DNA from: Lepidodermella squamata
Lineage: Eukaryota; Animalia; Gastrotricha
Direction: 5' to 3'
DNA: 64,000 bases
Assembly: GCA_047495785.1 (NCBI GenBank)
Contig: JBLDXI010000007.1
Coordinates: forward strand, 2,728,001-2,792,000
The notes under the pieces were generated by a model that saw nothing but the letters and a program-made list of their open reading frames with translations, searched no databases and had not been told where the DNA came from. Each line of letters opens with the position of its first letter. Position 1 is the first letter of the stretch. Positions 2,786 through 61,539 of this stretch are shown piece by piece. Made by a program: the position numbers and the translations under genes.

Positions 2786-3351
2786 GACGCAAACTGTATC
2801 AAAGGAACTCACTGTTTAAGGTTTAAGCTAACTGTGACCCTATTCAGCGGAACGCTGCAGACGCCAATCCTCCGGGCCCCATAATCCCAAACCAAAACTT
2901 GGTGACCGATTGTCATTGATGACTGCGACTTTGAAAGTACTCAAATTCAGTTGCAACTATTCTGAATTGTATATTAAGTTGTATTTTACGCGAAAATTAA
3001 TATTTTTTGAAGGACGAATATTTGCGATTGGCGCTAAAAACGCGCTGTTTCCAAGAGAGTCAGGAGTCGACTTTCATGGCGCCGTGTGACGATTTTTGCT
3101 GAGTTCTGCTCCCATTCAACCGTTCAGCTGTCCTATCTCTTTTGCTCTCTTGGTCGGTTAGCGTTGTCTGTGGTACGTGCTACGCGGTTAGAGGTAAAGC
3201 GTTCTTCTTTTTTCTGTAATTGTTGGAGTCGCCGATTTGCGTTTTGCTATTCTCTGTGACATCAACCGAGCTTTGTTCTCAATCATTTAGATCCACCAAG
3301 ATTAGTTGAAACATAACACATAACACATCAACGAGAAGCAATTGCTAGTTC
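2786..3351. promoter_or_regulatory. Short divergent intergenic region, putative bidirectional promoter for GT6 and Dicer
   Basis: Head-to-head start codons ~570 bp apart. No specific core motif was identified. Confidence 0.35.
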
Positions 3352-6300: not shown

Positions 6301-9300
6301 AACCATGAATCCACTAGCAGATAAGCGAACAATTTTTGGTAAAATTCGGCTAGAAGGCTGTGATGCCCACAACCCATCCAAAGTTGAAATTAATCTTTTC
6401 TCATAAATCCGTGACAAAAAAAACTGAAGGAGTCGGAGGCGAACCTTGCTTGGGAATCCTGTCCAAAGTTTGCTTGAATCTTCAGTCGAAGATGCATCCT
6501 TACTTTATTTTTTCAGAATTCTATTTCAGAAATTCTAATGAATTAACACAGATTCACGGCAATTCCTCGTGATGTGTTTTTGATGGAATCGAAAAAGCTT
6601 GAATGCCACCTTCATCTGCTCTCAGCACTGCAGTCAAACATTAGATAATTAGCGGTGTGCTTTTTATCGCTCATTTCAATCATTTTTCCTGACACGTAGC
6701 GTGATCACTACCATTCTCTAAATCATCTCATCAATTACTAGTAGTATTGTTTGTGAATGAAAAAATACGAGAGACCAAACGCGCGCGCACGATCTCAATC
6801 TTGAAGTGCTGAGATAAAAAACATCGATCTGTAAAGATCAAAGATGAAGAGATCACGGCGCGCCGCTGTCAAACTCAAAAATTGGAAACGCCAGGAGCAG
6901 CGTTACAATTTTGTTGCTAACGTAAACACATTTTTCACGTAAATTAAAAATTATCATGTAAAAAATTTTAATTTGTCGAAAAATAATTTTTCAACAAATA
7001 AAATTAACGGGATCCAAAAAAAGTTGCTAGTAGCGAGGGATTGCTCTTATCGGGGTTGCTTATATCGAGGGAGCACTGTATAAAGAACTTTGAGAATTAT
7101 AAAAAATCAAAGACTTTCACTTTCGATTGCGATAATTCTAGCATTTTACTAAATAATCCAGGAAACCAATCTCATCAAGCCAAGCATTATCAAGTTTTAC
7201 CCTGGATTTGAAATTGAGCCAAAATATAGAAACCCTAGTCTGCTTGAACATTTTTCCATGGGCAGGATTAGGGATATTTGGAAAAATATTATGCGTTCAG
7301 AAATTCAAAAAAATTCACGTTGCCGGAAAGATTCAAAATATCAAATCAGGAAAATTAAAAATTCATGAGAGCAATCAGTATGTTACGTGCCAATGGAATT
7401 GAACAATTCTAGGGAAATTTGGTTTATGGGCAATTATTTTTATCTGGGTAAAATAACGAAAATTACCGATCGGGGTTTTTCAATTTTCGAATTTCGGTAA
7501 AATCTCGCTTGAAATGGAAGAATTATTTGGGTTGGTTGAATTAAATAAATATATTTAAATGTTTATTAAAATTTGCCGAGTGGGGAAAGAATTGCGCAAA
7601 TTATGGAACAAGCTCTACATTATTGGATATTATTTCCAAGTTATTTTAATTGAATACTTATCGGCCAGGCTTTCGACGAATTAAGAGGAGGAAAATAATT
7701 TTATTTAATTATATTTTTCAGGCGAAATCGATCTCAGTGGCATACCTTCACGCACTGAAGCGGCTCAGTCAATTGTTGGCAACGAACCTATCATCGAAGA
7801 CAAAGCTGAAGGTGCTGGCACGAAAAAGCGCGTCCAAACTATCCCTCGGCCTCTCCCGAAATTTATCGAGAAAATCAGCCCATCAGCCCCTGCTGCAGAA
7901 AAGGAGTTCTTTTTATACAACTTTGACCTGGAATTCTCGTCGATTTTAACCGAAGACACGAATCGATTGTTGGAAATGGTCCAAAATTCGGGTCTTACGT
8001 TTGGCCTTCTCAGCCCGGTAAAACTGGCCGATATTCCACGATTTCGTATCTACCCACGGCGCCACGAGATTGTGTCTCAGTTGATTGAAATTAATTCGAA
8101 AATCTCGCTGAAAAATGAAGAATTTGAAAAAATTGTCAAATTTCATCTATTTCTAACGGAGAAAATCATATTCCGCCTCAATGACGAATCGACGCCTGAT
8201 TTCGAATTTTCGCTGGAAAATAGTTCGGCAACTCTACTGCCGTTTTTTATTGTTCCACTGCGAGATTCAGCTGAAATCGATTGGATAAGCGTTACTCTAT
8301 CAACTGATCAAAATTTCGACATCGAAATGTACCCGAAATCGGTTTTCGCCGATCAAACCTGCCTGTCTAAAGCCGATCTCGTTGAAAAAACTTCCGCGAA
8401 TTCAAAATCGCTGATCGTTATCACTGATGTTTCTGAATCAAAAACTGCGAAATCCAAAATGGACCCGGATAATATTACTCATTTCGATTTTTTGCGAAAA
8501 CGAGGCGTTGAAGTTACCGACCAGGACCAGAAATTGGTGTATGGAGTTCCGCTGACTAATAGACTGAGTCTTTTCAGCCGAATGACGTTGAAATCGGACG
8601 GTAACTCTGCGACGAAAAATGTTGGAAATTTGTATCTGCCCGAAACTTTGACTCGATTGCCGATCTCTGGGTCGTTAACAGCCCTGTCTCGTTACGTGCC
8701 ATCCTTAATTTTTCGAATTTACCAATTATGGGTGGTTAAAGATTTCCAAAATGCGATTTGCGGTGAGCTGGAGCTGCAAGTTAAGGAGGATTCGAGCTGT
8801 ATCGGCGATCAAGGCGCAATTTTCGACGTTTTCAAAAAAATTGATCAACCAGCTATCGATCAGAATTTAATCGCCGAAAAAATCGATTCGAAGTCAAATG
8901 AATTCTTGAAACTAACTGGTGATTTGGTTTCAGTTTCAAGTGATGACCTATTAAAATCTGTCCAGGGCCGAATTGACGGGAATTTCGGTGAAGAATGCCG
9001 TGCCTGTCATTATTTCATCCACGTGCATTTACCCGGCGCTTTTCGGTCGAATTTTATGGTGAAGAAAGACGAGAGCCAAAAGTTGGCCTTTCAATGCCGA
9101 ATTTGTGCGAAGTGTGATTTGAAGTTCAAATCGACGCCGTTTGATTTACTGGAGCATGTCGTGATTAATCATCCGCGACTCTTATCATCACCCCACATTA
9201 TCTGGCCATCTTTCACGGATGCGAATTGCCAATTTTGCCGGCTGATTTTTTCGTTGACGGAACAAGCTGGGTTGAATTCTGTGCCGGATCACGACGCTGG

Positions 9301-12300
9301 TCGAGCAATTTGTTCGGAAAATTGCCGCAAATCTGGGTCGATTTGCGCGAGGCGGGTCGATTTCGAAAATTTGCCGAAACCGCCGCGGGAAATTCGAAAT
9401 GTTTCGAACGATTCGCCGTCTCTGAGCCAATTTTTTCAAGTTTTGCTGTCGATTCGAGCAAGAGATATTTATGACAACGAGAGATTTGAGTTGTTGGGTG
9501 ATACTTTCCTGAAATATGCGATCACGACGTATTTATTTGCGAAATATCAACACATCAGCGAGGGCCAGGTGACCTTTGTCAAGGGAAAGTTGGTGTCGAA
9601 TGCGAATTTGCGAGGCTGGGCAGCGAAGTGGAAGTGCGTGGATTTGATGGCTTATCCTTTTCTGACGCCGTTTGATCCTCAGCAAGGTGAGTAGGCTATT
9701 CCTCTTTGCTAGGGGAAAGGGGTTTTGGTCATTTTTTTCGAATTTTAAGAAAATCGCAAAAATTGTGGTTGACCGGAACAATAGCGATATTTTTTATTGT
9801 TGAAAATTTGAGAATTTTATCATTTATCTTTCAGTTTGACCCAGAAAAGCTGGTTAAATCTTAAATTAAACCCAAATTAAAATTCAGAGCACGTTTTTTT
9901 GGTTTTGATTTATGTTGCTGGTAATTTGAGTCCTTATTGGGCCACCTTGACAAATTTTCTCCTGAAAATGGCATAATAATTTCAAAATTGAAATTTTTTT
10001 CGATAGCCATCTTTACTTGTTTAGCTCATTTACAGCTGAGTTGCCTGTCGTTGAAAAAAATGAACTCAACCTTTCTCACATCAGTTTATCGTTGTAACGA
10101 GTAACGATTCACGCATTTCTTTTCGTGTGAATGAATAACTTACTTGACTGTAAACCTTAGTTTTCGTAGTATGGACGCGTAATCCGACTTCTTGTACGAA
10201 TTAATGATGCAAGAAAAGCAGCAGATTTTGATGGTTGATGGGCTCCTACCACCTAGAGAGAGAGAGAGAGAAGATTAGGATAGGAAACACGATGCAATTT
10301 TTTCTACGACTATCCTAATAACTAGCCTAGCCCTGGATTGAAATTTATGAGCTTGTAATAAACGCAAAATATTGGAGAGGCTAATTTTATTTGACAATAG
10401 TGGTAAGTGGTAATAGTCCTTAGGAGTAGGCGTGGGAGCATCTGGCGAACGATTAGCCGAGTCCCGTTACATGAGCCGGGCGCAGGGTCTAGGTTCCGCA
10501 GTAGAATAATTGGCGATCCGACCTTCAAGTTCAGCCGATGAGGAGGGAGACTTGTGGGGTCTAGGCTGTTGAGGAACTCGAAAGGATAGATGGCGGGCTT
10601 CAGTCAGTTCGCTAGCCATGAACGCGGCACCTTCAGTCATTCCAGCAAAACGTTCGGGTCGACGGTGATTTCGATCAGATTTGGATTTGGGTGGTTGGCC
10701 AAACTTGTCAAGCTTCTGGCAGACATCTCGGGCGTGGCCAGTTTTGCCGCAGAAACTGCATTGAGCCGACTCGACAGAGTGGTACTTCTTGGACTTCGGT
10801 CGTAGATGGCCAGCAGCATGCGCGACCATGGCCGATTCAGTCGAAGGTTGAGGAGGACCAGACGACGACGGGGCTTGATTGAGCGATGATTCGAGCTGGT
10901 TTGTAACCCCCTCCATTCGGAAAGCGCACTCATGACCTTAGGCAATGTGAGCCCCTCTTGAGCCCTGAAGTATTGGGAAAAGGATTTGTATTGGGGTGCG
11001 AGCGCGATTAAGAACATAAAGACGATGAACTCCTCATCCCGGGCCAACCCTGCACTATCCACATTTGCGGAAAATTTCGTAAAAACGCGAACAGAATGCG
11101 TCGGGCGATTCATGAAGGCCTTGTTTGCAGGCAACCAGGCTTACGACAGCCGAATACTTTGTCAGGGACTTTTTGGGGGCGAAATGGTCCTTAATGGAAG
11201 CCCACATGTCAGCGGTTTTTTCGAAATACTTGACGCGAAATAATAACTCAGGACTGACATGCCGAATAGTGAGCGAGCATGCAGTACCATCGAGCTCGTC
11301 CCATGCCTTAACCTCGGCGGTGTTAGTAGTGGTGGCAACTGGCTTAGCCTTAGTGTCCTCGACTATGTCCAACGAACCAGTCCCCTTAAATTCGAACTTA
11401 ATGATCAAGCTTCAATGAGCATAATTATTACTACCCAACACAATTCTTTCTTGTATCACTTCATCCGAATTTTTTTCAATTATCAAGAAATTCACGAACA
11501 ATAATTTCGAGAAAAACCAACTTTTTTAAGAGTGATGAGTTCGCTGCTCAGATATTCCGAAATATTTGTGATGGAAAACGTCACTGCAAATTCCTCGATT
11601 AGCCGCAGACGCATGGTAGAAAGAGTTACTTGACAATTCTCATTCTCCGTGACGTTCACCAGATACTCAGTGTATTTCGCCCTGAATGCGGCTTTCGGTC
11701 TGTTTTGCCCTCATCCCGATGTACCTGGCGGATGTGCCTTGCTGTTCTTTGATTTAACGCCAAACATTTCAACTAATTCTTTTGACTGGTATTGACGCCT
11801 GTCGATGTTCGAAGAGCATTTCCATCTTTACCAAAGAATTGGAGGACGACAGTAAAGAAAAAATAATCATTTGCTAGTTTCACGTGAACACGTGGACAAT
11901 AGCTGAAAAGCAACTGCGGCAAATTATTACTGAGCCGCGGCAAAAATTTTCGGAAAAGGTGTAGTTCAGAAAAAGTTAAACAACGTGAAGTTTGTCGCCG
12001 TGATCCTGGTGAAGGTGGCCACCCTCGATTTGCTTGACATCCGGAATGACGTAGTCAACCAGCTGTATCTTAGCGGTTTCGTTAACAAACAGCTGTTTAG
12101 TGTAGCGGAATTGTTGAAACTAGCAATTTTTGATGTTGACAACTTGGCCTTCATTTTTTACGAGAGGTTTTTGCGAGCCAAAAATTACCACGCTGATTTT
12201 TCGTCTGTCATCGCGAAGGAAAAACTTCGTCGGCAACTCTTAGTCACAATAATTGTTAAATGATATTTTAATATTCATCTTCTATTGCTGGGATTTTTTC

Positions 12301-15300
12301 CAAGTAACTTGTGCTCTTCATCTGATATTTTTGATATTTTTAGCTTGGCTACCACCGATGTACAAAGACTTGTCCGAGAAATCGCTTCGTCGCTCGCAAC
12401 AAGTGGCGGACAAGGTCGTAGCAGACACCGTTGAAGCGTTACTCGGCCTATTTCTAACAACCTGCGGCCCGCAATGCGCCCTGAAATTCCTCCAAAACTT
12501 CGGCCTCGAATTCCGAGACATGCCAAAATTGGACAATTCACCCGAATCAGACTTCAGCACGTGGGCGCCGTTGATGAACCTTGAATTGATTGAAAACGAA
12601 GAAATCGAAGCTAAATGGGTTGAATTACGACTCGACGATGTTGAAGCGAAACTCGGCTATCATTTCAAGCACAAACACCTGTTGATTCAAGCTTTTTGCC
12701 ACCGATCGGCTAGTTACGGCCAGTTTCAATCCTACGAACGCCTCGAAGTTCTGGGCGATGCTTTGATCGATTACCTAGTCACGGCGTGTCTATTCTCGAA
12801 ATCAGCCAAATTCAACCCCGGAATTCTCACCACGGTTCGAATGGCTGTTGTGAATAACGACGTTTTGGGCGCGATTTGTGTCCTGAATAATTTCCACCAG
12901 CACATCAACGCTGCGCCGTCTGAACACTCGGCCATCAGTGCTTTTGTCAATGAATTTACGAGTGAGACGATGAATCGCGAGGTGAAGGCCTGTCCGTTTC
13001 TGAATTGCGGCTCGTGGGGCGATTCTGTTGAAGTCCCGAAGGTGTTGGGCGATGTGTTCGAGGCAGTTGCTGGCGCTGTTTTCGTCGACTGTGGCCTGAA
13101 TTTGGACACTTTCTGGGCCGCAATTCATCCTCTTCTTGAAAGTACAATTGGTAAGCCAACAAGTTTTGCGTTTTTCTTCATTTTTCTGTGCTTGCAACTA
13201 ATCATCGGCGCCTGACTAAAGGTGTTTAAGGAGTTTCCTTTTACCTATCCATTTTGGGCCCGAATTCGGCCCGTCTGTGGCCGGATAATGCCACTTTACC
13301 ATTCCGCGCTCTACAATGTGCCTGTGTGCAACGTTTACTGCAAATTCAACAAAGTTCATCAAATTTCGCTTCGCTGCACACGTTCCGGCAGAGATACTTT
13401 TCACGTCGTTATTCAACTCCTTCTTAATTGTATCCACCACCTCGTAGGATCTGCCTACTCTGTTGGTTATTGCCACCATCTTCTCTTTTTCTTCTGGTGA
13501 AAAAGGGTATAACGAGCTTTCGGAGAGGTCTCTGCGTTGGGTACTGGGGCCGAAATAATGGGTAATGATGTCGAACAGTTTTTAGAGACCTCTGAATTCG
13601 ATGACAGCGTTTTAGGGGAATGCTAGACACCTGCCCCGCTGTGGCATTCGACCAAGATCCTGTCGTTAAGTCAAAGCTATACAGATAGCTTTGCTTCATG
13701 TTATATCTTACCGACAATGATTTTCAGAAAATAGCTGATTAAACGCACAAGTGGCAATGAACTTTGTATTCAAGCGTTCAATCGTTCTTCTGTCAGGTTC
13801 TTGGCCCAACTCAAATTCGAGTTCAGCTAGGTCAAACTGGGACAAAATGAGATTTTTCAGTTGGGTTGGGGGGTTGTCCGAAATTTGGTCGGCCTTGAGA
13901 CATCCGCCGAACTATATCAAGGAAAAGTAAGGCTTTTTACAGCAAAAGATGGGACAATGCTTTTGGGTAAAGTCGTTTAAACTCAATTCGGGTTCCTCTC
14001 CAATCCTTAATTTTATCCGTAGGATATGAGTACGAACACGTTATACCGGCAACATTAGCGCCGGCCTTCTCCGCTGCCGATCTTGAGGTAAACGGCTTGT
14101 TTGTAGGCACCTTATTGTCTATGGTCAGGTTGGATGATTTGATCGTCTCGACTTCGTGCCGCATGAAACAGCGAGTAATGACCCCATGTTCTGTTCTAAT
14201 AATGTAGTCGCCATAGTCGCCGATCCGCGAGACGCTCCCAGTAGGCGTTGCGGCTCTGTTTGGTTCCGTTCTTCCTTTGTGATCGGTACTGGTACCTGGG
14301 TACCGACCACCAGCGCGGGGTATTTGAGTTTCAAGGCAGTCAGCATTCGATCGGCTTGTTTGTTCAGGCTAGTAGAAGCAGTAGCCCGAACTTCGGACTG
14401 CTTTTGTTGATAGTAGCATAGATCACACTCGTCTCTCGCCTGTTGCATTTCTTACATGGATTTATGAGAGCCAAACTGTTGTTTGAAGCGTAGGGGGGCG
14501 AGCTGGAGAAGTTGTAAGTCGGAATTTGAACGTGATTCGACCAGCTTGCCAGGGGGACATTGGACCTTCTAAAGTTCTTTTCAAACGTAGATTTCATGAA
14601 GTAACATTTTGCAACGAAATGTAAAAGGCATTCGAACATCGGAAGGTCATCGTCATCAGATAGTTGATTTTCTTGCTCTGCATATCAGCGATGGACTCAG
14701 CAATGTCGGGCAATACCGAGTCGACAGGTAGATCTTCGACTTCATCCGTCTCAGGTCCGCAGTCGCTGACTTCTGGTCCCAAGGTCGAGTCTTCAAGATG
14801 GTGCTCAATCTCAGCCAAGTCGATGAGTACATGACCATTAGGGTTGACGTAGTAGCCGATGCGATTTTCGTCATTTGTAAATTGAGCTGTGAGTTTAAAT
14901 GGCAAATTGAACTTGCTTTCTGTGGGTGGAGCTCAGTATTACGCGTGCGTGATATTGACAAGTATAGCGCGTGCCGGCGATGGGTGCGTCAACATTCAGG
15001 AGTCAGTTCTCGGGCACTTGTCTTCTATCAACGCAATTTTGGTGTCAACTTCAAAATGCGGATTTTTGCCCGTTTCCCGGAAGAAAGTCGCGCAACCGTT
15101 TGATACCTGTTGTAGTCGCTTGTGTTGTAGAAAGATCGGCTAGTTTTTGCAAATTAGCTTGACGACCTGCTAGAAAATCACGGACCTGTTGGAAAGCGTT
15201 TGTCTGTGGAAAAAAATTAGCTTTCAGACTAATGAAACTACCTTAGGAATGACAGCTGGTTGAACAGACTAAGCGTGGACTGATCAGTCACTGTAGCCGA

Positions 15301-16506: not shown

Positions 16507-19500
16507 ATGACTCACCAGAGCGCGGCCGTTTTAATTAAAGCGGCCTTATTAATAGCCTCCGCTTCCGTGAGCGCCGCTCAACAGGTGGCGGATCAAAGGC
16601 TCGTTGAAGCAATATGGAGTGGAGATTACGCAACCGTAGCGCAGCGGCTCGATACGGACGCGGATGCGGAAATGATAGACCCGATAACGAACTCGAGCCT
16701 GCTGTTCCTAGCCGTAAAAAACCATCGTGTCACAATTGCCCAACTGCTGATTCGATACGGAGCGGACTTTACTGCCCAGGACAAAACGGGCAACACTCCT
16801 CTTCACTACGCTGCTACGCTAGGGAATTTCCCTATGGTCGAGCTTTTAATCGAAAATGGAGCTGACCCGAACGCTTTGAATCCGAAAGATTGCAACCGCT
16901 CAGTTTTGCATGCCTGCTTTTCTCTGAATGTGGCAAATCGTTGTAACTCATATATAGCCCGGGTGCTTATCTCAGCTGGAGCGGATCCTTTTGTTAAAGA
17001 TTGCAACGGAACGACCTTGAACCAGTTGGCTAGCGATAACCCGAACAATGAATTCGTGTATGTCTATAACGAGCAGGAAAATCGAACAGCAAATTTCACG
17101 CCTGCAACCAGCAGCACCGCGCCAGATCTCTACCAAAGAGTGGTAAGGGCTGTTAGGCGGAATGACACCGATGCCTTGATTGGTTACATCGAAGAGAACA
17201 ACGCTGATACGGAATCTGAGTCTGGCCGGACACATTTAACCGCTTTATTTTACGCAGTTTTCATGAATGCTACTGAAATCGCGAAGATATTGCTCTTCCA
17301 TGGCGCCGATCCATACCGAACTGACGAGGCTGGAAACTCTCCGTTTTATTATGCGACTAGAATGGGTTACTACGAGATGACCAGGTTGCTCTTAAAATAC
17401 GGCGCCGAACCCAGCTCGGTAAATAGAGTTGACTGCGACCGTACTCCTCTTATCAATTGCTTGCGACCTGGGGTGATACTTGAAAATAAATGCGACATCA
17501 ACATGTTGAAGCTTCTGCTGAGAAGTGGTGCTAATCCTGAAATGTACGACTGCACCGGCACATCTGCTAGCAAATTAGCCAAAAATTTGAATAATGTGCA
17601 AGCAATCTACGCTTTCGACCCGAATTCAATGGCGAACCCTCCAGTGATTGCTACGACAACGCTGGCACCAAGGAGGCGCTTGCGACAGCCATTGTTATCG
17701 AGTAACATGACTCTAGTCGGAAACTACTCATCCTCGAGAAATGCATCTATTAGTAGCAACACCACAGACGATATGATGTGGGAGTTAATTCCGGCGAACG
17801 AGTTCATTCCTGAGGATTTGTTCAATACTTTGAGGAACGGCGATCTTATTCAACTAAACAAGATACTTGAATCTGGTATTGACCCTGATACAATCGAAGC
17901 AACCAGTAACCGAACGGCTCTTCTATACGCGATTGATGGTCGTTACCCGAATCAAGCCGCAAGTGTTCGAGCTCTTCTAGCTTCTGGAGCGAATATCAAC
18001 CGAACATATGACGGTTCTTTAACGGCTCTTCACGCCGCTGTAGTTCTAGGGAACGCTCCGTTGGTTCGACTTCTGCTGCAATATGGCGCTGATATCAACG
18101 CAATGACCGAAGATTGCGGCACAACTCCTCTGATGACCTGTGCTAGGCCATTTTCCCGAGGCACTGTTGGCGTTGAGAATCGCTGCAACGAAGTTATAAT
18201 TAAAATGTTGGTCCAGCTCGGCGCCGATGCTTCGACAAGGAATTGCCGGGGTCAAACTGCCTTAGCTTTGGCCAATCGTCATCCCAATCGCAAAGTGACT
18301 GAAGCTCTTGAGAAGTTAACTCCTATAGCTAGTGGACCCGTCATGCTAATTGGACAGAGTGCAACGCGGTCTTATATCGATATCTTACGGCAGCTATCGG
18401 TGTACGTCCCTCATCAGCTGGTTATCAGTGTCCTGCAGCCGAAAGGTGTGAGATTTGAATACGAAAGGGATGATCCTAGAGTCACGCGTCTTGTTATCGA
18501 ATATGGGATCGGCCAAGTTCGTGGTCAGCAAGACTACAGCTATCATTACGTTGTTCTTAATGCACCCGGTAAGTATGCCTATCAAAATTTAAGTTAGAAG
18601 TAATCGCAACCATTTACGCATCAGCCAATGCCTCGGATCCTTTTGTTTTCGTAAACAATGACTTGTCGCTCCAGCTTGATCAAACTATCTACTATCAAGT
18701 TGCAGCAACCTTAAACGACGGCCGCGTATTCGCTCATCGAAACTTGGCATGGACTTACACAGACGAGGCTTCTTTAAATGCAACAAACACAGGAAACGTA
18801 ATTTTGCTAAAATGTTGCTAAAATTTTTGAAATTATTGGCATTCACTTTAGGGTACCTTTGCACTGAGTGGAACTTTAGTAAATGCAACCATTATTTCTG
18901 GCAACTACACTGATGGGCCGATACCAGTTAATCTAACCATCCCAGTTAACGCCACCAGGGTGACGGTCACCAGAGTGTATCGAACTACAACCGCTCGATG
19001 GGCTAACGTTACCAGAACGCCAAGAAATAGAACAACAGCGAATCCTGATGAGATTTTACCCGATATTGCAAACCTCTACAATTTGACGATTGCTAACGTA
19101 TCGCTTAATACAACAGCGAGAGTAAGAACAACAACCCCTCGCAATTACAATGTAACGAGAAACAGGACATCGACGATAGATCCAGACAGCATTTTACCAG
19201 ATATTGCTGGCTTGTTTAACGAAACATCGAAGTCAAATTTTTCGACAGCAGTGGTGCGTACCACCATTGCTCCAACAACTCGTGGAAGACCGGCTAATTA
19301 CACGGGGCGAGCGAGCGGAACAACTCCTAGCATTGATTCGATTTTACCTGATTTATCCGGTCTGCTTAATCAATCTGGAGATTCTATGAATCGAACGATC
19401 AGGATAACAACAGCTGCCCCAACTACACGGGGTAGACCGGTGAATTACACGAGAAGGGCAGATGGCACCACCCCGAGCATTGATTCAATTTTGCCTGATA

Positions 19501-21385
19501 TCTCTAGTTTGTTCAATCAATCTGCTGACAATTCGTTCAGGGTAACTACAGTTGGGCCTACTACTCGGGGCAGGCCGGCCAACTATACAAGAAGGGCTGA
19601 TGGCACCACTCCAAGCATAGATTCGATCCTACCAGACATCGCAGGTCTATTCAACCAGTCTTCGGCCACTACTACAGTGGCGCGAACCACAAGAGGCCGA
19701 CCGGTCAACTACACAAGACGAGCCGATGGAACTACGCCCAGTATAGATTCCATTTTGCCCGACATATCTGGACTTTTCAACCAGACTGCTAGGCCCCCTG
19801 TTGTGACTACCATCGCAAGGACAACGAGAGGAAGACCTGATAACTTTACAAGGCGGGCCGATGGAACTACGCCAAGTATTGACTCAATCCTGCCCGATAT
19901 CTCAGGCCTTTTCAGCCAATCTAATCAAACTTCGATAAGAACCACTGTTGCCCCAACAACGAGAGGCAGGCCGGGCAATTACACCCGACGACCGGCAGGC
20001 TCAACGCCTAGTATCGATGAAATCTTGTCTGATATCAGCGGATTGTTTAACGCCTCTGGAAGTCTCGGGAACCGAACCACTTTAGCCCCGACTACACGAA
20101 GTAGATCTGCTAACTATACCAGACAACCCGCTGGTACAACTGTGAGCCATGGCTTGTTCAACCAAACTGTCGCGCGTACGACCCGTGGCAGGCCGGCTGG
20201 TTTTACCAGAAGACCTGAAGGGACGACAGTGAGTCCGGATGAGATACTCTCCGATATTGCCAGTATTTTTGATAATACCACTGAGCCGGTCTTGATTGAG
20301 CCTACTGAAGAGCCAACATCGGACATAGCTGGGGATCAAACCACAGCATCAACGCCAGACGAGGCTACGCCAGAAACTGGTGATCAAACAACTTTGAGGA
20401 CCCGAAGAACTACCGTTGACATGGACGAAATTCTTCCCGACCTTTCCAGCCTGTTCAATAACAACACAGGTAAGAATTTCTTTCCTAAGCAAAGGCTTAT
20501 CGCTGCTTTTTAGGTGAGGTAATGGGGGTCGATTTCTCTAAACTTTGGGTCTACCAGCAGTCGTGCGGACAGGCGAATTTAACTGAACTATCTGCCTTGC
20601 CTTGGAACGTGGTCTTAGACATCCGTTTCAATGACACTATGGATGAACCAGCGATTTGCGGCGGCACTTTGATTTCGAACCGAACTATGATCACATCTTA
20701 CCACTGCTTCGATCGCGGAGATGCTGAGGTGGTCAGGTGAAGTTTCCACCTTAATTATTTACTTTATTCTATTCTGGTTTTTATTAAGTATCAACGCAAC
20801 TTTGAATGATGGCAGCTTCCTTTCGGTAATTCTGGTCGACTCGCACCCCAACTACCTGTTTTCGAATCGGCAGTACGACTTGGCAATTCTTAAACTACCA
20901 GTCGAGCTTCCAGAGATCGAATTCGGCGAACAAGTTTCACCTGTATGCCTGCCTACCTTGGAGGATTGCTTAGCCGGGTTCATACCTGCCAAAGCGCCCG
21001 AGACCAATTCCAGCTGCGTTGCCTCCGGGTGGGGAAGAAGTAAGTCGATAATACTCTGAAAAAGCTAAGATAACATCTTCAATTTTCAGATGAAGCTGTC
21101 AGCACGATACCAGCTAATGTGTTGACTTATCAGCAATGCAACAGTTCTTATTTCGGACTGAGGGATACGACCACAGATACTGATATGTGCGTTTCATCTC
21201 CTGTCGACACCGACTGCCTGGGAGATGATGGTTCCGCAATCTTCTGCCCTGTAATATCTGGCGAAAACACCCGAATTATAGTTCAAGGATTCTCATCAGC
21301 CGGTGAGACGTGTTCAAGTGCTGAACAACCCTCCATCTACAGCCAGTTATGCCCTTCTATGCCGTGGCTTCTTTCAAAACTGTGA
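16507..21385 (+). CDS. Secreted ankyrin / CBM39-like / tandem-repeat / trypsin-homologue protein, paralogue 1 (~1540 aa); exons 16507-18568, 18625-18797, 18852-20469, 20514-20736, 20789-21039, 21090-21385
   Basis: Signal peptide MTHQSAAVLIKAALLIASASVSA, three ANK modules and a YVPHQLVISVLQPKGVRF...FVFVNND...YYQVAATLNDGRVF...WTY domain. About 10 repeats follow, then LPWNV...CGGTLIS...TSYHC...YDLAILKL...SPVCLP...GDDGS. The in-frame GT-AG junctions sum to 4623 nt. Confidence 0.85.
19000..20465 (+). repeat. Coding tandem repeat, ~10 copies of a ~40-45 aa unit (TTRGRPxNYTRRADGTTPSIDSILPDISGLFNQ)
   Basis: Seen directly in ORF 18960-20513. DNA copies differ mainly at synonymous positions. Confidence 0.93.
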
Positions 21386-22015
21386 ATGCACAATAAGAAC
21401 GCACCTGTAATTTACTAGCACTCGTTGATAATTTATGATGTAGATTCTAGAATTTCGTGATTATTTTTATTCGTTTTCAGTTCGATCACATTATTGATTG
21501 ATATTTTCGTACTAGTTCGTTTGTTTATAGATGCTGAGATTTTTTTCAAGAGCTGAGATCTTCATTAAAATTTGATCAGTTGACCTAAACCAAGGGGTTG
21601 TTGTTAATCTCACACCTGCAGGTAGTAGTAGTGATGCTGATGTTAATTTGAGTGGGCACGCATGTTCTACTATGATGAAGCGATAGCGCGCCGGTAAGAA
21701 GCGTCAAAATTATTATTATATTGTTAAAAAACGCGACCGTATATAATAGGGTGATACAATAATTATGATAAATGACGATCGAGCGAAAATGAGAGTGAGG
21801 GCAGTATAAATTTACAATGTGCGTATTAAATAAATAAATAAAATATACGCCTCAAAATGCTTTGAAGCCATACATCTGTTTGGCTCATGTTTTCTCGTCC
21901 ATTATTAATCCTTAACTTTTCAAGTCAAGTGGAGTAGCCTTTAATAGTACACGTGCGATCCTAGTAGCCAACAAAAATTGATCTAAATGTCTCAGCCTGT
22001 TATATAGTGTCGCAA

Positions 22016-25000
22016 ATGAATTTTAATTTATACCACGTTATCTTAATTTTACTTCATTTCGCAATCGAAACTCAGCAGCAGCAAGTTCAAAGGGTGATCG
22101 ATGCAATATGGAGTGGTGATTACTTAACCATCCAGCGCAATTTAGATTCTGGAATTGATCCGGAAGTTCAAGTATTCAACGGAACGTTGCTTACATTAGC
22201 AGTTAAGGCGCATAAAACAGCTATTGCTCAACTTTTGATACGTTATGGAGCCGATATCACAGTTGAAGATTTGCAAGGCTTTACACCTCTTCATTACGCC
22301 GTGGTCTTGGGAAATCTTCCAATGGTCGAAATGCTGGTGGAAAATGGCGCAGACCCTGCGGCACAATACGGCCATAAATTCTGCCAGGGTTCCGTTTTAC
22401 ACTCTTGTGTGAAGCCAAATGGCGGAAATCGCTGCAACGGATTGATTTTGGAGGCATTGATCACTGCTGGCGGCGATCTTAACGCTGAGGACTGCAAGGG
22501 ACGATCTGTTGCAGAGTATGCCATCGAGCATCCAGATCCGGAATTCGCAGATGCTAGCTTCATGTTCGAATCTTTCAGCGATAAGAAACCATCGGCTAGT
22601 CTCTCGAATTTTTCCGCGGAAATGCAGCTGGTTCAAGCAGTTCGGGCGGGCAACTTGACCAAAGTCTTGCAACTTTTGGATAAAGAGAAAGTGGATGTTG
22701 AAGCTGAAAATCCTTTTACTCATCTTTCAGCCTTATTCTACGCTGCGATCCGTAATCGGACTGCCATAGCCAAGGAATTGCTAGATCGAGGCGCAAATCT
22801 TTATCGAGTTGACGAAGCTTCAAATACACCGCTTTATTACTCTGTGAGATTAGGCTTCTTTGAAATGACGAAACTTCTCCTGGAAAATGGTGCTGACGCC
22901 ACTGCTGTAAACCGAATTGATTGTGGGAGATCCATTCTGATGACCTGCGCTCGATTTGGTGCCGTTTTGGACAACAACTGCAACTTCGCTATTGCGAAAT
23001 TGCTAATCGAGCAAGGGGCTAATCCTGAACTTTTTGACTGCAGCGGTATGACTGCGACAAAATTGGCGTACACCTCGGATAAAATCGATGTCTTGAGGGC
23101 TCTTGATCCGACTGCGGATGTTTCTGGGCCGAGCAAAGGAACGAGGCGACCTTTGAGAAAAGTCACTCTGCCAAACAAAATCGCCCTAGCGACTTCAACC
23201 GACATTACCATGAAATCTGGGGCTAGTGTGACAGCCAATTTTCTTAGCACTAACTTGACAACAATTAACGGGCCTACAACTACCAAGGCGTTAATAACTT
23301 CGAAGCCGACAACCACTAAGAGGATCACTACTACGATAACAACTACAACAACTTCAACAACAACTACTACTCCACCGTCAACTCGGGCCGGTCCCACCTT
23401 GCCGTTTTTCCTGGTTCGCAGGACGACTCGCAGAAACATCCCAGTAGCAGCACAAGAGGCGACAACTAGTACTACAACAACACCTGCGCTAGCTCCGTCA
23501 ACAGAAGTTACTCTCCTGGTAACTACTGAGCATCTAACGGATTCTGGGCTTAATACGACTCGAGATTTTCTAACAACAGAGTCCCACACGAAACTTGAGC
23601 CTAAAAGAGCATCCAGCAGCTCTATGGGGGGTTTGACTTCCCGGTCACGGAATCTTACTCAAGAAATTTTGAACGATTCGATTATTCCACCCAATGGACT
23701 GAAAATAAGGAGCCAACAAGAACCTATGAGGAAACCATTCAAAGCCTCCGAGTTATTTCAGAGCATTGAACTGGGGGATATCGTTCATTTGAGTGAAGTT
23801 GTTGATTCTGGAGACCTCGATCTTGAGACAACGACTCATAGCAGCACAAATTTGTCAGTCCTACTTTACGCACTAAATGGTCGCTATCCTAACCAAGCAG
23901 CTACGATAAGGATCTTACTCGAAACTGATCGGCAAAGTGTTCCGTTGAACACGAGTTTATTCTACGCTGTCAAACTGGGATCCACTCAGATATTGCAAAT
24001 GTTGCTGCAACATGGCGCTAATGTTAACGAAAACATCTGGGACGATTACAACTGTACTTGGACTCCTTTGCTAGCCTGTGTAAATGCAATAGGAAATTGC
24101 GACGAAGTCGGCATAAGGCTGCTAATGAGATTTGGCGCTGATGCCAGCGCTATGAATTGTAAGAATCAAACAGCTGCAGATCTTGTCCCGCTACGTCGTC
24201 CACCTGGTAATGATAAAGGAGGCCAAAATCGGATGCTGAAGGCTTTGAAACCTCAGTATGTCCCAGAGGTCACAACTCGTTATCCAGGGAAATACATATT
24301 CAATGCTCTGAAACAGTTATATAACTACGTACCTCGTGAGGTTGTATTTGAAGCGCTTGAGCCTCAAGGCCTTCGAATAGAGTACGCCAGAGACGACAGC
24401 CGAATTTCCGAAGTTTACGTCGTCCTAGGTAATGACACAGCTATTGATTACCTCGACATTATGAGCAACGCTACGTATTACCAATTGATGACTCCTGAGG
24501 ACGATCCATTCTCGCCGTTTACATATATCGATTTGGATAAAACACTCGTTGAAGGGCAGGTTGTTCACTACCAAATAGCGACTATTTTCGCTGATGGCCG
24601 AAAGTTTGCGCGAGGAAACCTAACTTGGACTTTCTTTGGATTCAACAATACAGGAATTTCGTCTGCCAATAGAACTCTTCTCAAAGCAACTGGACACTTG
24701 AGGGAGCGAATGGGATTCGATGGCAAGCCTAATGATTTATCCGTCCTTCAGTGTGGTCATATCGACCCAAGTTACTATCAGAGAATGGCAACAAATGACA
24801 CATTGGATACTCCGCTGCCATGGAATGTAAATTAAAAGCGTGTATTACTTTGGGTGTACTAATCATTAATCATTTCCATGACAGGTTAAGCTAATGATTC
24901 AGCATAGGACTCAAGGAAGATTCAACTGCAGCGCAGTTTTGGTATCTCCAACAAAGTTACTGGCGTCTATGGCTTGTTTTATTGACGACTCCATGTCTCA

Positions 25001-25645
25001 ACTTCCAAAGCAAGGATTCACCTCGTAAGATAGTAATTGTATCCCGGAATTAACTGAATTTTCCTGTTTCAATAGGATCAAAGGATTACTATCAGACAGC
25101 AGAATAATAGATCTCAGATTTGCAGAGATAAATTATGATTACAGAATGGTAATCCTTGAGCAAGTCGATACGAGAGCTGATCCGATGGCTGGACCTCACA
25201 ACTACCATCTTGTCTCTCCAATTTGTCTACCGAACCTTCAAGAATGCGAAATTCTCGAGAGTTCCCCTTCTGAGGGTGATAGCGAAAGTCTGAACTGTTT
25301 CGTCTCAAGCTATAATCAAGATTTAGTCTTCACTGGTAACAAAATTCCTAAAATATGTTAACAGATACACTTTTTATACTAATTACAGAGGTCATTCCGT
25401 CAGCAAATCAGGATGACGAGGGAACATTTTGCCGCGGAGTTTTCGATGGAATGGCCAGCAGTGGTTTGACTTGCTCTTTTGACGAAGTTCAGCCTTCCGA
25501 ACAAGGAGTCCGATTGGCTATGGACCAACTTCAAGACATCGGGTCTGCAATATCGACATGTCTAAAACGTCAGATTTCATCGAAATCTCAAACAACTTAT
25601 CATCCTATATGCCCCGCGTTATCTTGGCTTTTGAGCTTTATATAA
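22016..25645 (+). CDS. Secreted ankyrin / Thr-rich / CBM39-like / degenerate trypsin-homologue protein, paralogue 2; exons ~22016-24826, 24885-25024, ~25077-25335, ~25389-25645
   Basis: Hydrophobic N-terminus and the same three ANK modules (AIWSGDY, AVRAGN, SIELGD...YPNQAA). A poly-Thr linker precedes YVPREVVFEALEPQGLRIEYARDD, then LPWN|VKL...CSAVLVS...VSPICLP...ICPALSWL. Confidence 0.82.
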
Positions 25646-26313
25646 TTAGAAGTACACGCGTTTATTTTAGAGCACCACCTCAAAGAAATGTATGGTTCTG
25701 GTTATTTTGTACGCCCGTGTGAGTCTTCAGCATGCTATTCTCATTTTTTTCAATGTCCCTGTACCACAAGATGAAATAATTTTCACGGTAATAAAATAAG
25801 TGTTGCATTACGTGCTTCCTGATTTTCTAATATAAAAAGTCGCTATATCGTGCGTGAAAAGAAACCTGCGCTGCGAAAAGACGCGACACATAATTCACGC
25901 GTATTACCTATGCATAATTTAGGCCTAATAATTTCACGTCGCAGCAGTGAAGCTTGTGACAACAATTTCTTAGCGAAAAATCTTATCATCATTTTTTGTT
26001 CTCCATCATATCTCGCTCGTAATTGTAATTTGCGTGGTGTTTAGATGCAACGCGCGCTACTGTTTATCAACTCGTGCCGCGCTCTCACAGGTGACAAGTC
26101 ACAGCACCGAGCTCGGGGGGTTAATGCTAGATAAATATCTAGATGCTTCATCGCAAATAATTATCCGCAACCTGGCATGCAAAAATTATGATATTATTGC
26201 TATACGCAACACATAGCGCTCACGATAAGATAAACTCACACACGCGCGCGGATGTAACTACTCTACCATAACCAGGTTTTACAGCTGCCAACCCCGCTTA
26301 GGATCCTACCATC

Positions 26314-29300
26314 ATGCTTATCAATGGTATAATCATCCTAACTATTCTCAAAATCGCAGTGGCAGAGCAGATTTTTCCTGGTGAAAAATTGGTCGAAGCT
26401 ATTTGGATTGGTGACTACACTACTATATTAAAATCGTTGGAAAATGGAATTGCACCAGACTTGGATCTTATCTACAACCACACGCTGCTCTCTCATGCTG
26501 TTCAAAATCATCAAACCGCGATTTCTCGACTTTTCATCCGTTACGGAGCCGATGTTAATGCAAAGGATTTCAGAGGGCTAACCCTTTTACACCACGCAAG
26601 TGAGCTAGGTAACCTTCATATGGTGGAATTACTCATTGAAAACGGGGCAGATCCAGCCAGATTTTACGACGAAGGGAACTGCAGAAGAACGGCTCTTCAC
26701 TCTTGTGTTCTTCATAACCCTGGAAATCGATGTCATGGCTTGATTTTACAGGCTTTAATCGCCGCTGGTGGCGAAGTGAATGCACTGAATTGCGACAATA
26801 AATCAGTGTTGGACTTGGCATTGGAAAATCCGAATAAAGAATTCTTGGAGTCTGTCAACATCGAACAGCTTAAATTCATGATCGATCACGATATTCCAAT
26901 CGAATTGCATCTCATTCATGCTGTTAGAAACGGAAATTTTAGTGAAGTTGTTCGACTTTTGGATGTTGAGAATGCCGATGCCGAGTCTGAGGAGTGGAAT
27001 ACCCATCTTTCACCGCTGTTCTACGCGATAATCGGCAATCACACTGATATTGCGCAGCTTTTATTAGAAAGAGGCGCTAACCCATTACGAAGAGATGAAG
27101 GCGGAAATTCTTACCTGGGTTATGCAGTAAGATTTGGTTATTCACAGATGGTCCAACTCCTGCTAGAGCATGGTGCTGATGCCAATGCTATCAACATAAT
27201 GGATTGTGATCGGCCAGTTTTGATGGAATGCTCTCGGCCCGGTTCTATTTTACCACGTAACTGCGGCTTCGAGATCGCAGAACTGCTAATGGAACATGGA
27301 GCTAACCCTAAATCTCAAGATTGCACAGGCGCTCAATCGATCCCGGAATTCGGCCAGAAGCTTGGTAACTCTGATTTCATTCAAGTTGTTGAATCGAACC
27401 CTGGTAATAGAAGGACAGCGAGAACGTTGAAGGCTAATCGAGAAACTTCGGAATCGGAAAATCGTAATTCGGGGAGACAAATACCCAAGAATTTCCTTCT
27501 GATCCGGAAAACGAGTCCTGTGACGACGACTACAACTATGGTTCCGCCTGTTGCCATTAATGGGACAAAGCGTGTACCTTTGGTTGATCTGTTGTATCAA
27601 TACTTTTTGAGGCAGAATGGGAGTGCGAATTCAAGCGCTCTGCTTCTGACAACTCTTCCTGCTACAACGACCACTTCCACTCCCCTCAGAAGACAGGCAA
27701 ACTTCGCCCCGAAACATAGTGCTGAAGAATTGTTCGAAAGTATCCGATCTGGAGACATCAAAGACTTGATTTCAATACTTAAATCGAATGAGCTAGACTA
27801 TGCATACCTAATCGATCCCGAGACCAATTTAACCACACTTCCGATGTTGCTAAGCGATCACTATCCAAACCAAGCTGCCAGTTTGAGAATCATCCTCCAG
27901 TACGTGCCTGGTTTGAATCTAAATGGATCTCTTCATATGACTATGCATCTTGGCTCAGCTCCTGTCGTTCATCTTCTTCTTCAAAACGGAGCGGATCCGA
28001 ATGAATTTCAAGCCGATAAGAATGATTGCTCTGTCACGCCTTTGATGCTTTGCGTAATCAGTGTTGCAACTTGCGATGAAGTCATCATCCGGCTATTGAT
28101 GAAATACGGCGCGAATGCTAAAACGCTTCGAAACTGCAGGGGACAGAGTGCTGTAGATCTTGCCAACGTTCGCCGGTCTCTTGGTCACTTGGATACTGAA
28201 GAATACAGCCAAGTTTTGCAGGCTCTGAATGCAACTCTCATGGAATACGCAACTCCGAGGCTGCCCTACACCACTAATGTAGTCCATGCGCTTCAACAGC
28301 TGTATGAATACACGCCGCAAGATCTGGTTATCGAAGTTCTGAGGCCTAGAGGTCTCCGTTTTCAGTACGAGAGGGACGATCCTCGACTCGATCATATTTT
28401 GATTGAATTACGCGACGGCGGTCCCGATCACCACTACATTGCAGTTTACAGCGCGGACTCCAGCAATCCTCACGCGCCATTTGTCTTTGTAAATAATGAC
28501 ATTGAAGTTCAGGAAGGCGATTCTTTTTCTTACCAATTAGCGGCAGTCTTCAAAGATGGACGTAAATTTGCCAAGGGTCCGATGACTTGGAGTTACCAAA
28601 CTAGGAGTGCTGTTAGTTTCTTACCGCTATCCTCGCGAACCGAAGTTCCGAGTACCGCCACTTCACCGGTTAAGAAGTTGGAATGTGGATACATTGCTCC
28701 AGAATACAGCTCGGAGCAGCTCTCTTCTCAAGTTTTGCCGAAACCCTTGCCATGGACTGTAGGTTTTCTTCCTTTCGATAGACCAACGCTCAAACATTTA
28801 TTTTCCTCAGGTCAAATTAGAAACCAATTTTACGAGCTCGAAATCGGAAAGTTGTAGCGCGGTGCTGGTTGGCTCTAATACTTTTCTCGCCTCAGCCTAC
28901 TGCTTTTTCGAGCCCTATACAAATCTAGTCAGGAAATTCAATTCGTGAGTTTTCTTCTCGATGCCAACTCTTAACGCAAATAGATTTCTTTTAGAATCAA
29001 AGCCACGCTGAATGATGATAGAGTTTTCTCAGTCAGTCTCGTCAACATAAGTTTTGAAGCCAACATCGCCGTCCTCAAGCCTATGAATGACGACCGCAGA
29101 TCAGTATTTGGATTATTTAATTACGGCCATGTATCTCCTGTTTGCTTGCCAACCCGCGAAGAATGTGATTCATTAGAACTGCTGAAAAATGGAGTGAATT
29201 CAACGACTGCGATCGAGTGCTACATTTCGAGCTACAACCAAAGCAAGATCATGAGAGGTAAGATCGAATTTTAGCAATCACTTCGGGCTTGAAATCTCTT

Positions 29301-29575
29301 AACGCATTTTAGAGCTATCTATCTCTTGGCTCGATTCGAACGACGAAACCTTTTGCGAATCGCTGAGAGGTGATATCTTGAGTAACTCCTTGGTATGCAC
29401 TATCCAGAAACCTGACAAGACAAGCAAGCAGAAAATGGAGAGCTCGAAGCGCCAGTTATTTGACAAAATCTCAACTCGCATCAACAAATGTCTCGGGAAA
29501 ACTTCGGCTTCTACGGAACGGACTTTCAACCCAATCTGCCCTGCATTATCCTGGCTAAGCCAAATTGTAACGTAG
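26314..29575 (+). CDS. Secreted ankyrin / CBM39-like / degenerate trypsin-homologue protein, paralogue 3; exons ~26314-28758, 28811-28944, ~28995-29257, ~29332-29575
   Basis: Signal peptide MLINGIIILTILKIAVA and the same ANK modules. YTPQDLVIEVLRPRGLRFQYERDD...VQEGDSFSYQLAAVFKDGRKF is followed by LPWT|VKL...CSAVLVG...VSPVCLP...ICPALSWL. Confidence 0.82.
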
Positions 29576-29749
29576 AATTCTCAAAGGAATTAGTCGCATA
29601 CTGCCATATTTATTTACCAATTTATCTTGCATTTTAAACCCGAGTGATTTCTAAGACAAATTAAGAACAGCGTCAACAAATAAAAAAGCGATCCTATGAA
29701 GATCAAATTTTGCCACAAGCCAAGCTTCGCTGGTTTCAATGAAACTTCT

Positions 29750-32236: not shown

Positions 32237-33787
32237 TCATGAAAAGCGAATTGCTTCAGAATCGTCTATAACCACTTCTTTGAATTTACTTGCCTTTATG
32301 CATTGCTCAACTTTTCGAATTATAATCGCAACTCGCCGATCTAGAGCCTCCAAAAAGTCATCGGTAAGCAAGGGATAGACTGGATCTGCCCGAGAACTTT
32401 CATCAAAAGCTTGACTTAGTCTCTTCGGTTTTCCTTGGTGGTATTTCATCAACGTTTGAAGAGTACTGTATCGAATGAGGCAGCAGTGGAATATCGGGGT
32501 CAGAATAGCTTCGTCGTCAAAATCTGGCTGTCCGAACCTGGAAGAAATAATGGCAAATAATATTTTCCGCCACGCAGCTTCGACTTACGCTCTACCGTTA
32601 TCGAACATGATCGGAAATGAAAAATTGGCGAAGTCCGGAAAGAAGTGAATGTGATGCCGGTCTTGATTTCCGATCAAAAAGTCGAAAACTGCGATATCCA
32701 TGATATCTAGCAAAATTCGCGATTCCATGTAATCCACCTCAACTTGATAGCAATATTCATAATCTCTCAGCCACGGTGGGTCGCGATTTTTCCAATAAGT
32801 TCTGGCATACGGTGACTCGAGTGAATTTAGATCCATTTCATCGCGGTTCGGCAGTACGAATTGAATCGATCCCTCAATCAAATCCGGCGAGCCACACACC
32901 GCATGGTAGATTTTGCACATATCACAATTTCCGTGGATGCATTTATTGCCAATAGGCGAGATGTATATCGTTTCGTTAAGCTTGTCGCTCGCAAACGGTT
33001 CGATATCTCGAGTGATGTTGAAGATACGACCGACTGTAGGTGGAACCCAGTAGAATCCCAGCAATTTATCGATGTGATATGCCGCAATTTCAGCGTTGTG
33101 CCTCTCGTAATCAGCGAAATAAGTGACGTCAGGTTCCTGGCGAGAATGCTGCCTATCATGGCGTTGAGGCTTGAACAAAACTTCGGTTTCATCTTCTAAA
33201 GTTATAAATAGTTTGAACCAAGTGCCGTAGTCAGCCTCTTCGGTAATATTGGCGACTTTTAGAAGTTTCATGTTTTCGATCAGCTGTGACACAGCCCGAT
33301 GATCGGGATCGTAAAGTCGGTGGGGTTGCTTGATCAAAATTCAAAACACATTTTCATATGTAAGATAAATACGCCGTGATAAAGTGAAAATAAGGCTTAC
33401 AATATTGTTGTGGACAAGTTTCCAGGCACTTGTAATACTCCCCTCATGCACGCTCAGCGATTTCTTCAATGGTCTCGGAGCATTCGGGTAGATTCGTTTG
33501 CTAGGTTGGTTCAACGCCAAATCCAGGCGTTTTTCATTCGCCACTTTGTAGGGTCTAACGAATAGAGGTGGTTGATGAGCCAGTTCCGGATCGATACATG
33601 CATTGTACGGAACGCTAAATACCGCAAATTTACATTTTTTAGGTTCGGATTTAGCTGCCCGAGGTAAGACTCGCCAGGATAAAAATGGCTGCCGTGGAGC
33701 GTCGATAAAAAGTGACTGGCACGGGTACAAAACTGCGCCGACGTTACTTAATGGAAAATTAAGGTAGATTGCTATTATAACTAACAT
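32237..33787 (-). CDS. FAM20C: FAM20C-like secretory-pathway kinase, paralogue A; exons 33787-33401, 33328-32589, 32537-32237
   Basis: LFKP, DYERHNAEIAAYHID, VPPTVGR, CIHGNC, FDFLIGNQDRHH, DNGRAFG, CCLIRYSTL and EALDRR. Confidence 0.88.
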
Positions 33788-40300: not shown

Positions 40301-40529
40301 GCTGAACTTCATCCAAGGACTGGCCGCAATTTGCATTTTTGCAACGGTCCACTCCCTAGTTATGCTGTGGCTGATGAGCGAAAAGGCACATCTGGCTAAC
40401 AAAGCCGTAGCACGGGGCCGATTCACCTTTGCGGCATGCGCCGACCTGTGCGGCTTCGCGTTGTTCCTCATTGCCTTTATCGCACTAACCGGCTATGCGG
40501 CTGATAAGATACGCAACAGCTATGCATAA
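37398..40529 (+). CDS. Cys-loop (pentameric) ligand-gated ion channel subunit with two N-terminal concanavalin/LamG-like domains and Ser/Thr-rich linkers, ~1030 aa; exons 37398-39297 and 39337-40529
   Basis: Signal peptide and two related ~210-aa beta domains (FWAMD...FTFSMLVFI...WIHAIFTY; FWPMD...FTVSMHIYI...WLFVAFSY). The 39-nt intron joins in frame to IDRLLDVD...IWNPPL, the Cys loop CSLNLADFPVDTQKC, RRRPEFY and four TM helices. Confidence 0.83.
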
Positions 40530-40682
40530 CAGGCGCCGGTGATCACCCACATAGCGTAATCCTCTTATCAAATAACGTGTAATACGTGTCGTGCCTTTCG
40601 CAACATATTGTTTACTCAGTCTGTGACTATATACGTTGTAGTCGCATCAAATACGAAATTTTTCCAGACCTGCCCACCTCGA

Positions 40683-61140: not shown

Positions 61141-61539
61141 GGTGTCAGTATATTAAACGATAATTGAGACAATTTTTCAGAACGAAAAACGACGCGCAAC
61201 ATTTTCAGCGAAATCGCGTCGTTTTCGAACGTTTGAAAAACTGAGTCGACAAATTTTCACAGTGATATATTTAATAAATTCTAAAATGAAAATCAGAATC
61301 AAAATATTACAGTTTTTACTAATAAATAATCGAGATTTTTTACTAACATTATTACGCAATATTGCTGCGATTGTCGATGCAGTAGTAAAGATGAATAGAA
61401 ACACAACACAACACACGGTTCAGACATAAATTACGAGCACCAAATTTCATAGTAGGAAAGAAAAATCACTCAAAAACAAAACACGCCGATTAACATCGAG
61501 TATAATATCAATTTGCGTAAAAAAACAAGTGAATTTTGT

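Follow-up and report, generated by a model that had tools for sequence, protein, structure and literature searches.

In a 64,000-nucleotide stretch of the genome of the gastrotrich Lepidodermella squamata (assembly GCA_047495785.1, contig JBLDXI010000007.1, positions 2,728,001 to 2,792,000; hereafter the window, to which all coordinates refer), three adjacent genes, here called G1, G2 and G3, each encode a single chain composed of a predicted signal peptide, three ankyrin modules, a domain of the CBM39 fold and a trypsin-like domain that appears catalytically dead. This single-chain architecture is real in all three genes, and we read the proteins as secreted, non-catalytic multivalent binders or adaptors acting in surface or gut defence, a reading to which we give a probability of about 0.4. 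The original prediction, made from the DNA alone, had described the trio as a candidate pattern-recognition system. Its three adjacent paralogues with three ankyrin modules each are confirmed by the gene models and by matches to Pfam Ank_2, and the architecture appears to be uncatalogued as it had proposed, since database and literature searches returned no matching family or description; the idea of a new pattern-recognition system is not supported as stated, because key contact residues are missing.

The three genes lie in tandem on the + strand at 16507-29575, with their frames intact (Table 1). Splice models built on GT-AG sites give six, four and four exons for G1, G2 and G3, with introns of 44-58 nucleotides (44-56 in G1) and no internal stop in any spliced frame, and the final two introns have the same phase and position in all three genes. 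In G2 and G3 the sequence from the ATG into the first protease motif lies in a single exon without stops, the beta domain and all three ankyrin modules included, and the fusion of the domains into one chain, as originally proposed, is therefore independent of splice prediction in these two genes; in G1 it relies on three modelled introns ahead of the protease domain. Database searches were run exon by exon, and joined translations served only for frame checks and for aligning the three paralogues. Matching domains of the paralogues are 28-52% identical. Each ankyrin module is nearest to the module at the same position in the other genes and not to its neighbours in its own gene, and it follows that the complete layout predates the duplication of G1, G2 and G3.

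Each ankyrin module holds about five repeats (Pfam Ank_2, E 1e-36 to 6e-48). Ankyrin repeats are known from textbooks as a module for use inside cells. Four cysteines, which the original prediction had missed, are invariant in all nine modules and stand in the same columns (C-x7-C-x6..14-C-x19..20-C), that is, 36 of 36 are conserved although the nine modules are only 27-52% identical, and the 12 module cysteines of each protein are the only ones ahead of the protease domain. The ankyrin search, which covered the best 8000 candidates and proteins with lengths between 0.55 and 1.75 times that of the query, returned generic ankyrin proteins only, with identities mostly of 23-33%. The four-cysteine spacing was present in none of the 120 generic ankyrin matches listed, at least three of the four cysteines were found in none of the 211 aligned ankyrin domains among the listed matches, and scans of metagenomes yielded either nothing or two ankyrin loci of the generic kind, which lack the cysteine motif. 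Being invariant here and lacking in generic ankyrins, the four cysteines fit an extracellular life and constitute the strongest evidence for secretion that this analysis adds. Judging from the ankyrin consensus, Cys1 and Cys4 would lie in neighbouring hairpins, and Cys2 and Cys3 would close a variable loop. An ordinary ankyrin-repeat gene is also present at 15-1674 (+); its score against the profile of the four-cysteine module is poor, and it is therefore placed outside the trio.

Secretion, claimed at the outset from a signal peptide, is probable. In all three proteins the top 11-residue hydrophobic window is located at the N-terminus, and the first ankyrin repeat comes after a plausible cleavage site; no upstream in-frame ATG is present within the open frame of any of the three genes. 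The expected absence of a transmembrane segment agrees with a hydropathy scan of the three proteins, which found no hydrophobic window resembling a membrane span beyond the signal or the folded domains. N-glycosylation sequons exceed the shuffled expectation in G1 (53 versus 20) and G2 (19 versus 10), the count in G3 (14 versus 9) not being significant (p 0.07). The Thr-rich linkers of the original description are present, long in G2 only, where a Thr/Ser-rich linker sits between ankyrin modules two and three, and short in G1 and G3. Because hydropathy, cleavage-site pattern, sequon excess and even-numbered conserved cysteines agree, the proteins are probably secreted and soluble, without a membrane anchor.

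The beta domain, predicted to span about 100 amino acids (aa) and to have a CBM39/GNBP-type fold, measures about 105 aa and does match that fold. CBM39 is its sole Pfam family match in all three genes, at 18.2 bits in G2 (E 0.0022), 15.3 bits in G3 (E 0.017) and 12.2 bits in G1 (E 0.16, first half-domain), and none of the three domains reaches the curated family cutoff of 25 bits. The G2 domain alone was modelled from a four-row alignment at a predicted local distance difference test (pLDDT) score of 76, the single-sequence model being unusable at only 38. A Foldseek search of the PDB with this model returned N-terminal domains of betaGRP/GNBP3 as its top nine matches (best E 2.7e-5; template modelling score of 0.71-0.73 and identity of 14-24% among the top matches). 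An independent aligner (VIA) placed the model on 3ie4 with Z 12.0 and a root-mean-square deviation of 2.0 over 95 residues (Z 11.8-12.0 and 2.0-2.2 across the betaGRP/GNBP3 N-terminal domains), the next family reaching 8.3, and an Atlas search with the same model gave CBM39 clusters as its top three. The concurrence of model, Foldseek, independent aligner and Atlas indicates that the assignment to the CBM39 fold is right. Region, alignment and sequence searches found no sequence relatives of the domain in large protein sets or in the PDB, and Atlas feature searches returned just FN3/Ig-like or unnamed clusters. Eight matches among 1.84 billion representatives were rejected, being sums of weak similarities to repeat proteins (best single stretch below 14 bits), and a match of the CBM39-region query to Toxin A (E 0.04), likewise from summed repeats, was rejected as chance.

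The residues reported to contact triple-helical glucan in insect betaGRP are Trp76 (PMC6272582) and, around the IKDG turn, Tyr78, Gly83, Gly85 and Arg87 (PMC6678557). In a published CBM39 alignment of 22 rows Trp76 is kept in 20, including those of oyster, sea urchin and Ciona (PMC3981738 Fig. S3C), and comparison by eye with this alignment showed that the place of Trp76 in G1, G2 and G3 is taken by Gln, or by Ile, Leu or Val in the other register, no Trp being found in the strand before the DG turn. The place of Tyr78 is taken by Ala or Thr, Gly85 by Lys or Val and Arg87 by Ala, so that Gly83 is the sole contact residue kept in all three paralogues. The conserved second-strand His of CBM39 also appears to be replaced, and the one Trp of each domain is located in the terminal core strand. 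With these replacements the known insect glucan site is lost in all three proteins, and the step from a CBM39 fold to a glycan sensor, as first stated, is unsupported.

A C-terminal trypsin fold without a complete triad had been predicted, correctly as the three domains turned out. The G1 exons match Pfam Trypsin (E about 1e-6) and solved S1 proteases in the PDB; the triad His (20702-20704) and Asp (20877-20879) are kept, Ser is replaced by Asp (21227-21229), and the IVGG activation site is absent from this domain. The G2 and G3 domains gave no Pfam match in the exon-by-exon search, and their trypsin fold is assigned through their alignment to G1 (z values against shuffles) and through their conserved cysteines, 10 of the 12 of G1 being kept; His, Asp and Ser are all lost. 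The protease-like domain would accordingly be catalytically dead in all three proteins, judging by these residues. The last exon of G2 (25389-25645) and of G3 (29313-29575) on the + strand lacks the serine motif, has two fewer cysteines and resembles an amphipathic helix, changes from which it follows that the second trypsin barrel may be remodelled.

G1 alone carries, between the CBM39 fold and the protease domain, a repeat stalk of about 500 aa that had escaped notice before, in which 27 of the 33 Asn residues stand in N-glycosylation sequons. Same-residue codons differ at 67% between the repeat copies, indicating that the repeats are old and maintained at the protein level. Weak Pfam matches on the stalk (Caskin-tail and others) had no passing stretches and were rejected as chance.

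Two public sequencing runs match the DNA of the locus, and their contigs were compared over 23750-29700 (part of G2, and G3). In the first, which is probably an RNA run, contigs fall on ankyrin, beta-domain and protease exons of both genes, with zero cover over the intergenic region 25740-26336, and a joint from 25024 to 25076 corresponds to the exact removal of the predicted G2 intron 25025-25075, seen in one contig with 24 letters on its short side. The proposed splice models thus find support in probable RNA at one G2 intron, with exons of G2 and much of G3 covered, and both genes are probably expressed. The contigs of this run are short (up to about 190 nucleotides), none joins two domains and the 5' ends are uncovered. 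The same run holds many opposite-strand joints in this interval, as is typical of amplification chimeras. The second run has many mismatches to the window and an in-frame insertion of three bases after 27652, in the G3 linker, and because of these differences it is taken to come from another strain or haplotype. Among the 40 variant sites with the best support, out of 175, those in coding sequence affect 29 codons, 21 silently and eight as missense, with no stop among them.

None of the 120 listed matches of the ankyrin search combined ankyrin with CBM39 or Trypsin in Pfam, and a literature search on CBM39, secreted ankyrin, serine-protease homologues and Gastrotricha found no description of the layout. 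The insect betaGRP/GNBP3 proteins (CBM39 with an inactive GH16) are secreted and soluble, as the trio probably is, and resemble it in joining an Ig-like CBM39 fold to a dead enzyme partner. In G1, G2 and G3, however, the dead enzyme has a trypsin fold and GH16 gave no match, the CBM39 domain lies inside the chain, after some 15 ankyrin repeats, the residues known to contact glucan are gone, and the Pfam score stays under the family cutoff. Lacking GH16 and the contact residues, they are not GNBP/betaGRP proteins. The occurrence of CBM39 beyond arthropods is already known and not new here: the CBM39-GH16 glucanases of Crassostrea, Strongylocentrotus and Ciona (PMC3981738 Fig. S3) include a spiralian case, but they have retained both GH16 and the motifs of His and Trp, and the trio has neither.

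Serine-protease homologues of the clip-domain (PPAF-II), masquerade and haptoglobin types are secreted, as the trio probably is, and are alike in their C-terminal S1 fold without catalytic Ser and in their N-terminal modules on Ser/Thr-rich linkers, and PPAF (2b9l) was among the PDB matches of a G1 exon. Their usual change is from Ser to Gly, whereas G1 has Ser to Asp and in G2 and G3 two cysteines are missing along with the complete triad; clip-domain homologues carry one or more clip domains at the N-terminus, whereas the trio has ankyrins and CBM39 and no Pfam clip match. Latrotoxins (PMC13611351), the sole animal example of extracellular ankyrins met in the literature search, use ankyrin repeats outside the cell, as the trio probably does, but in one continuous solenoid of 22 repeats on a pore-forming domain. 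G1, G2 and G3 have three short cysteine-bearing modules and no pore domain and, unlike latrotoxins, a classical (predicted) signal peptide followed directly by the first module. The trio are serine-protease homologues with an undescribed set of N-terminal modules.

If the proteins are secreted binders or adaptors, the signal peptide would be removed and the four cysteines of each ankyrin module would form two disulfides, most plausibly one between neighbouring hairpins and one closing the variable loop of 6-14 residues, making the module stable outside the cell. The ankyrin modules, with glycosylated linkers between them, would grip protein targets multivalently, the CBM39 fold would bind another ligand or dock proteins, and the dead protease domain would dock onto active proteases or substrates as a cofactor or decoy; the likeliest setting is defence or the handling of microbes, on the body surface or in the gut. 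Each of the three folds is an interaction module, and in other animals two of them are part of the equipment for recognition and protease cascades. Several points weigh against such a role. The immune setting is borrowed by analogy from arthropods, and the comparison with the insect Toll or prophenoloxidase cascades is weak for a gastrotrich, nothing at the locus indicating such a cascade. The loss of the glucan-contact residues removes the sole direct link to pathogen recognition, the disulfides of the ankyrin modules are putative, deduced from the sequence, the G1 stalk would suit a mucus or adhesive protein equally well, and the listed variants indicate purifying and not diversifying selection.

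A bolder version, which we hold to be unlikely, is that gastrotrichs possess an undescribed immune-like system outside the cell and that these proteins are its non-catalytic arm, serving in recognition or as cofactors. In such a system disulfide-stabilised ankyrins (natural secreted DARPin-like binders) and a repurposed CBM39 would couple recognition of microbial surfaces to secreted proteases. As binders or adaptors, the three proteins would mean that a phylum hardly studied so far may have assembled extracellular binding tools of its own from cysteine-bearing secreted ankyrins, a GNBP-type fold and a pseudoprotease. The trio offers small domains for asking whether any glycan is bound by a CBM39 fold that lacks the contact residues of insects, and whether disulfides can stabilise ankyrin repeats, a question relevant to the design of secreted repeat-protein binders. 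What would surprise a specialist is the layout itself, together with the secreted cysteine-bearing ankyrin module.

The alternative that survives best, though we consider it somewhat improbable, is that these proteins have a structural or adhesive task outside the cell, in cuticle, mucus, the secretion of adhesive tubes or the egg coat, where their ankyrin, Ig-like and dead-protease domains would cross-link other proteins and glycosylated stalks would keep the layer hydrated or spaced. The loss of both the catalytic and the sugar-binding signatures, the Arg/Thr-rich, densely N-glycosylated stalk of 500 aa in G1 and the mostly silent variants all suit this explanation, and the masquerade-type pseudoproteases of insects function in attachment. 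Against these stand the absence of any collagen-like, DOPA-type or vWA cross-linking motif from what was seen and the confinement of the stalk to G1, neither G2 nor G3 having it.

That the proteins are true beta-1,3-glucan receptors, in which CBM39 would bind fungal or algal glucan, the proteins would cluster and the pseudoprotease would recruit a cascade in the manner of GNBP3/betaGRP, seems to us quite unlikely. The fold matches the betaGRP/GNBP3 N-terminal domains far above other Ig folds (Z 11.8-12.0 against 8.3). Moreover, the binding site is disputed even in insects, between a convex and a concave face (PMC7915573), and CBM56 uses the same surface for laminarin at 12-15% identity; the loss of residues is therefore compatible with glucan binding, which could proceed through another surface. 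On the other side, none of the three proteins keeps Trp76, Tyr78, Gly85 or Arg87, GH16 is missing and nothing at the locus indicates a Toll or prophenoloxidase cascade.

We regard as very unlikely a role as feeding aids in the gut lumen, binding food bacteria or algae and holding or regulating digestive enzymes. CBM39 does occur on GH16 proteins of oyster, sea urchin and Ciona (PMC3981738), and the beta-1,3-glucanases of marine invertebrates are mostly digestive (PMC8949617), but the trio has no active enzyme domain and has lost the glucan-contact residues. Least probable is an artefact of the gene models, with ankyrin and protease parts belonging to separate genes or the proteins unsecreted, for which the transcript contigs that bridge no domains and leave the 5' ends uncovered leave room, but against which speak the single stop-free exon from ATG to protease start in G2 and G3, the recurrence of the same order three times, the one intron seen removed, and the even-numbered conserved cysteines and excess sequons that fit secretion.

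Table 1. Features of the three genes, with positions in the window.
Feature	Position	Strand	Description	Basis
Gene G1	16507-21385	+	1540 aa; exons 16507-18568, 18625-18797, 18852-20469, 20514-20736, 20789-21039, 21090-21385	
G1 predicted signal peptide	16507-16578	+	aa 1-24	Hydropathy and A-x-A type cleavage site
G1 ankyrin modules	16585-17076, 17122-17622, 17803-18318	+		Pfam, module alignment
G1 CBM39-fold domain	18388-18767	+	Intron 18569-18624 splits domain	33-45% identical to G2 and G3 domains
G1-only stalk	18984-20469	+	Ten Arg/Thr-rich repeats, spacing 42-74 aa	
G1 serine-protease homologue	20546-21382	+		Pfam Trypsin, PDB alignments
Gene G2	22016-25645	+	1155 aa; exons 22016-24826, 24885-25024, 25076-25335, 25389-25645	
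G2 predicted signal peptide	22016-22072	+	About aa 1-19	Hydropathy
G2 ankyrin modules	22082-22555, 22610-23113, 23768-24250	+		Pfam, module alignment
G2 CBM39-fold domain	24311-24643	+		Pfam CBM39, structure model, fold searches, residue check
G2 strongly degenerate trypsin-like domain	24731-25642	+	10 Cys	Alignment to G1, z = 15.5
Gene G3	26314-29575	+	1034 aa; exons 26314-28758, 28811-28944, 28995-29257, 29313-29575	
G3 predicted signal peptide	26314-26364	+	aa 1-17	Hydropathy and A-x-A site
G3 ankyrin modules	26374-26859, 26899-27399, 27718-28233	+		Pfam, module alignment
G3 CBM39-fold domain	28288-28608	+		Pfam CBM39; 40% identical to modelled G2 domain
G3 strongly degenerate trypsin-like domain	28669-29572	+	10 Cys	Alignment to G1, z = 19.7

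The window, of which 43% is guanine plus cytosine, contains several other genes. A Dicer gene with helicase, dimerisation, platform and RNase III domains occupies 3828-13215 (+), and an exon of a Fam20-family secretory-pathway kinase lies about 3 kb past the trio at 32585-33337 (-). Further along are, at 37398-40529 (+), a pentameric ligand-gated channel preceded by an open reading frame of 635 aa without a Pfam match, and a single-frame gene with ankyrin plus SOCS-box (ASB-like) at 40608-41900 (+). On the - strand there is an open reading frame of 411 aa, again without a Pfam match, at 58271-59506, and the stretch 59935-63090 holds one for a ubiquitin C-terminal hydrolase and another with WW plus two PTB domains (Fe65-like). 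At 1808-2812 (-) we found a gene for a glycosyltransferase of family 6 (GT6, ABO-type; Pfam E 1.8e-23). The distribution of GT6 is patchy among invertebrates, and the origin of this gene may be of interest.

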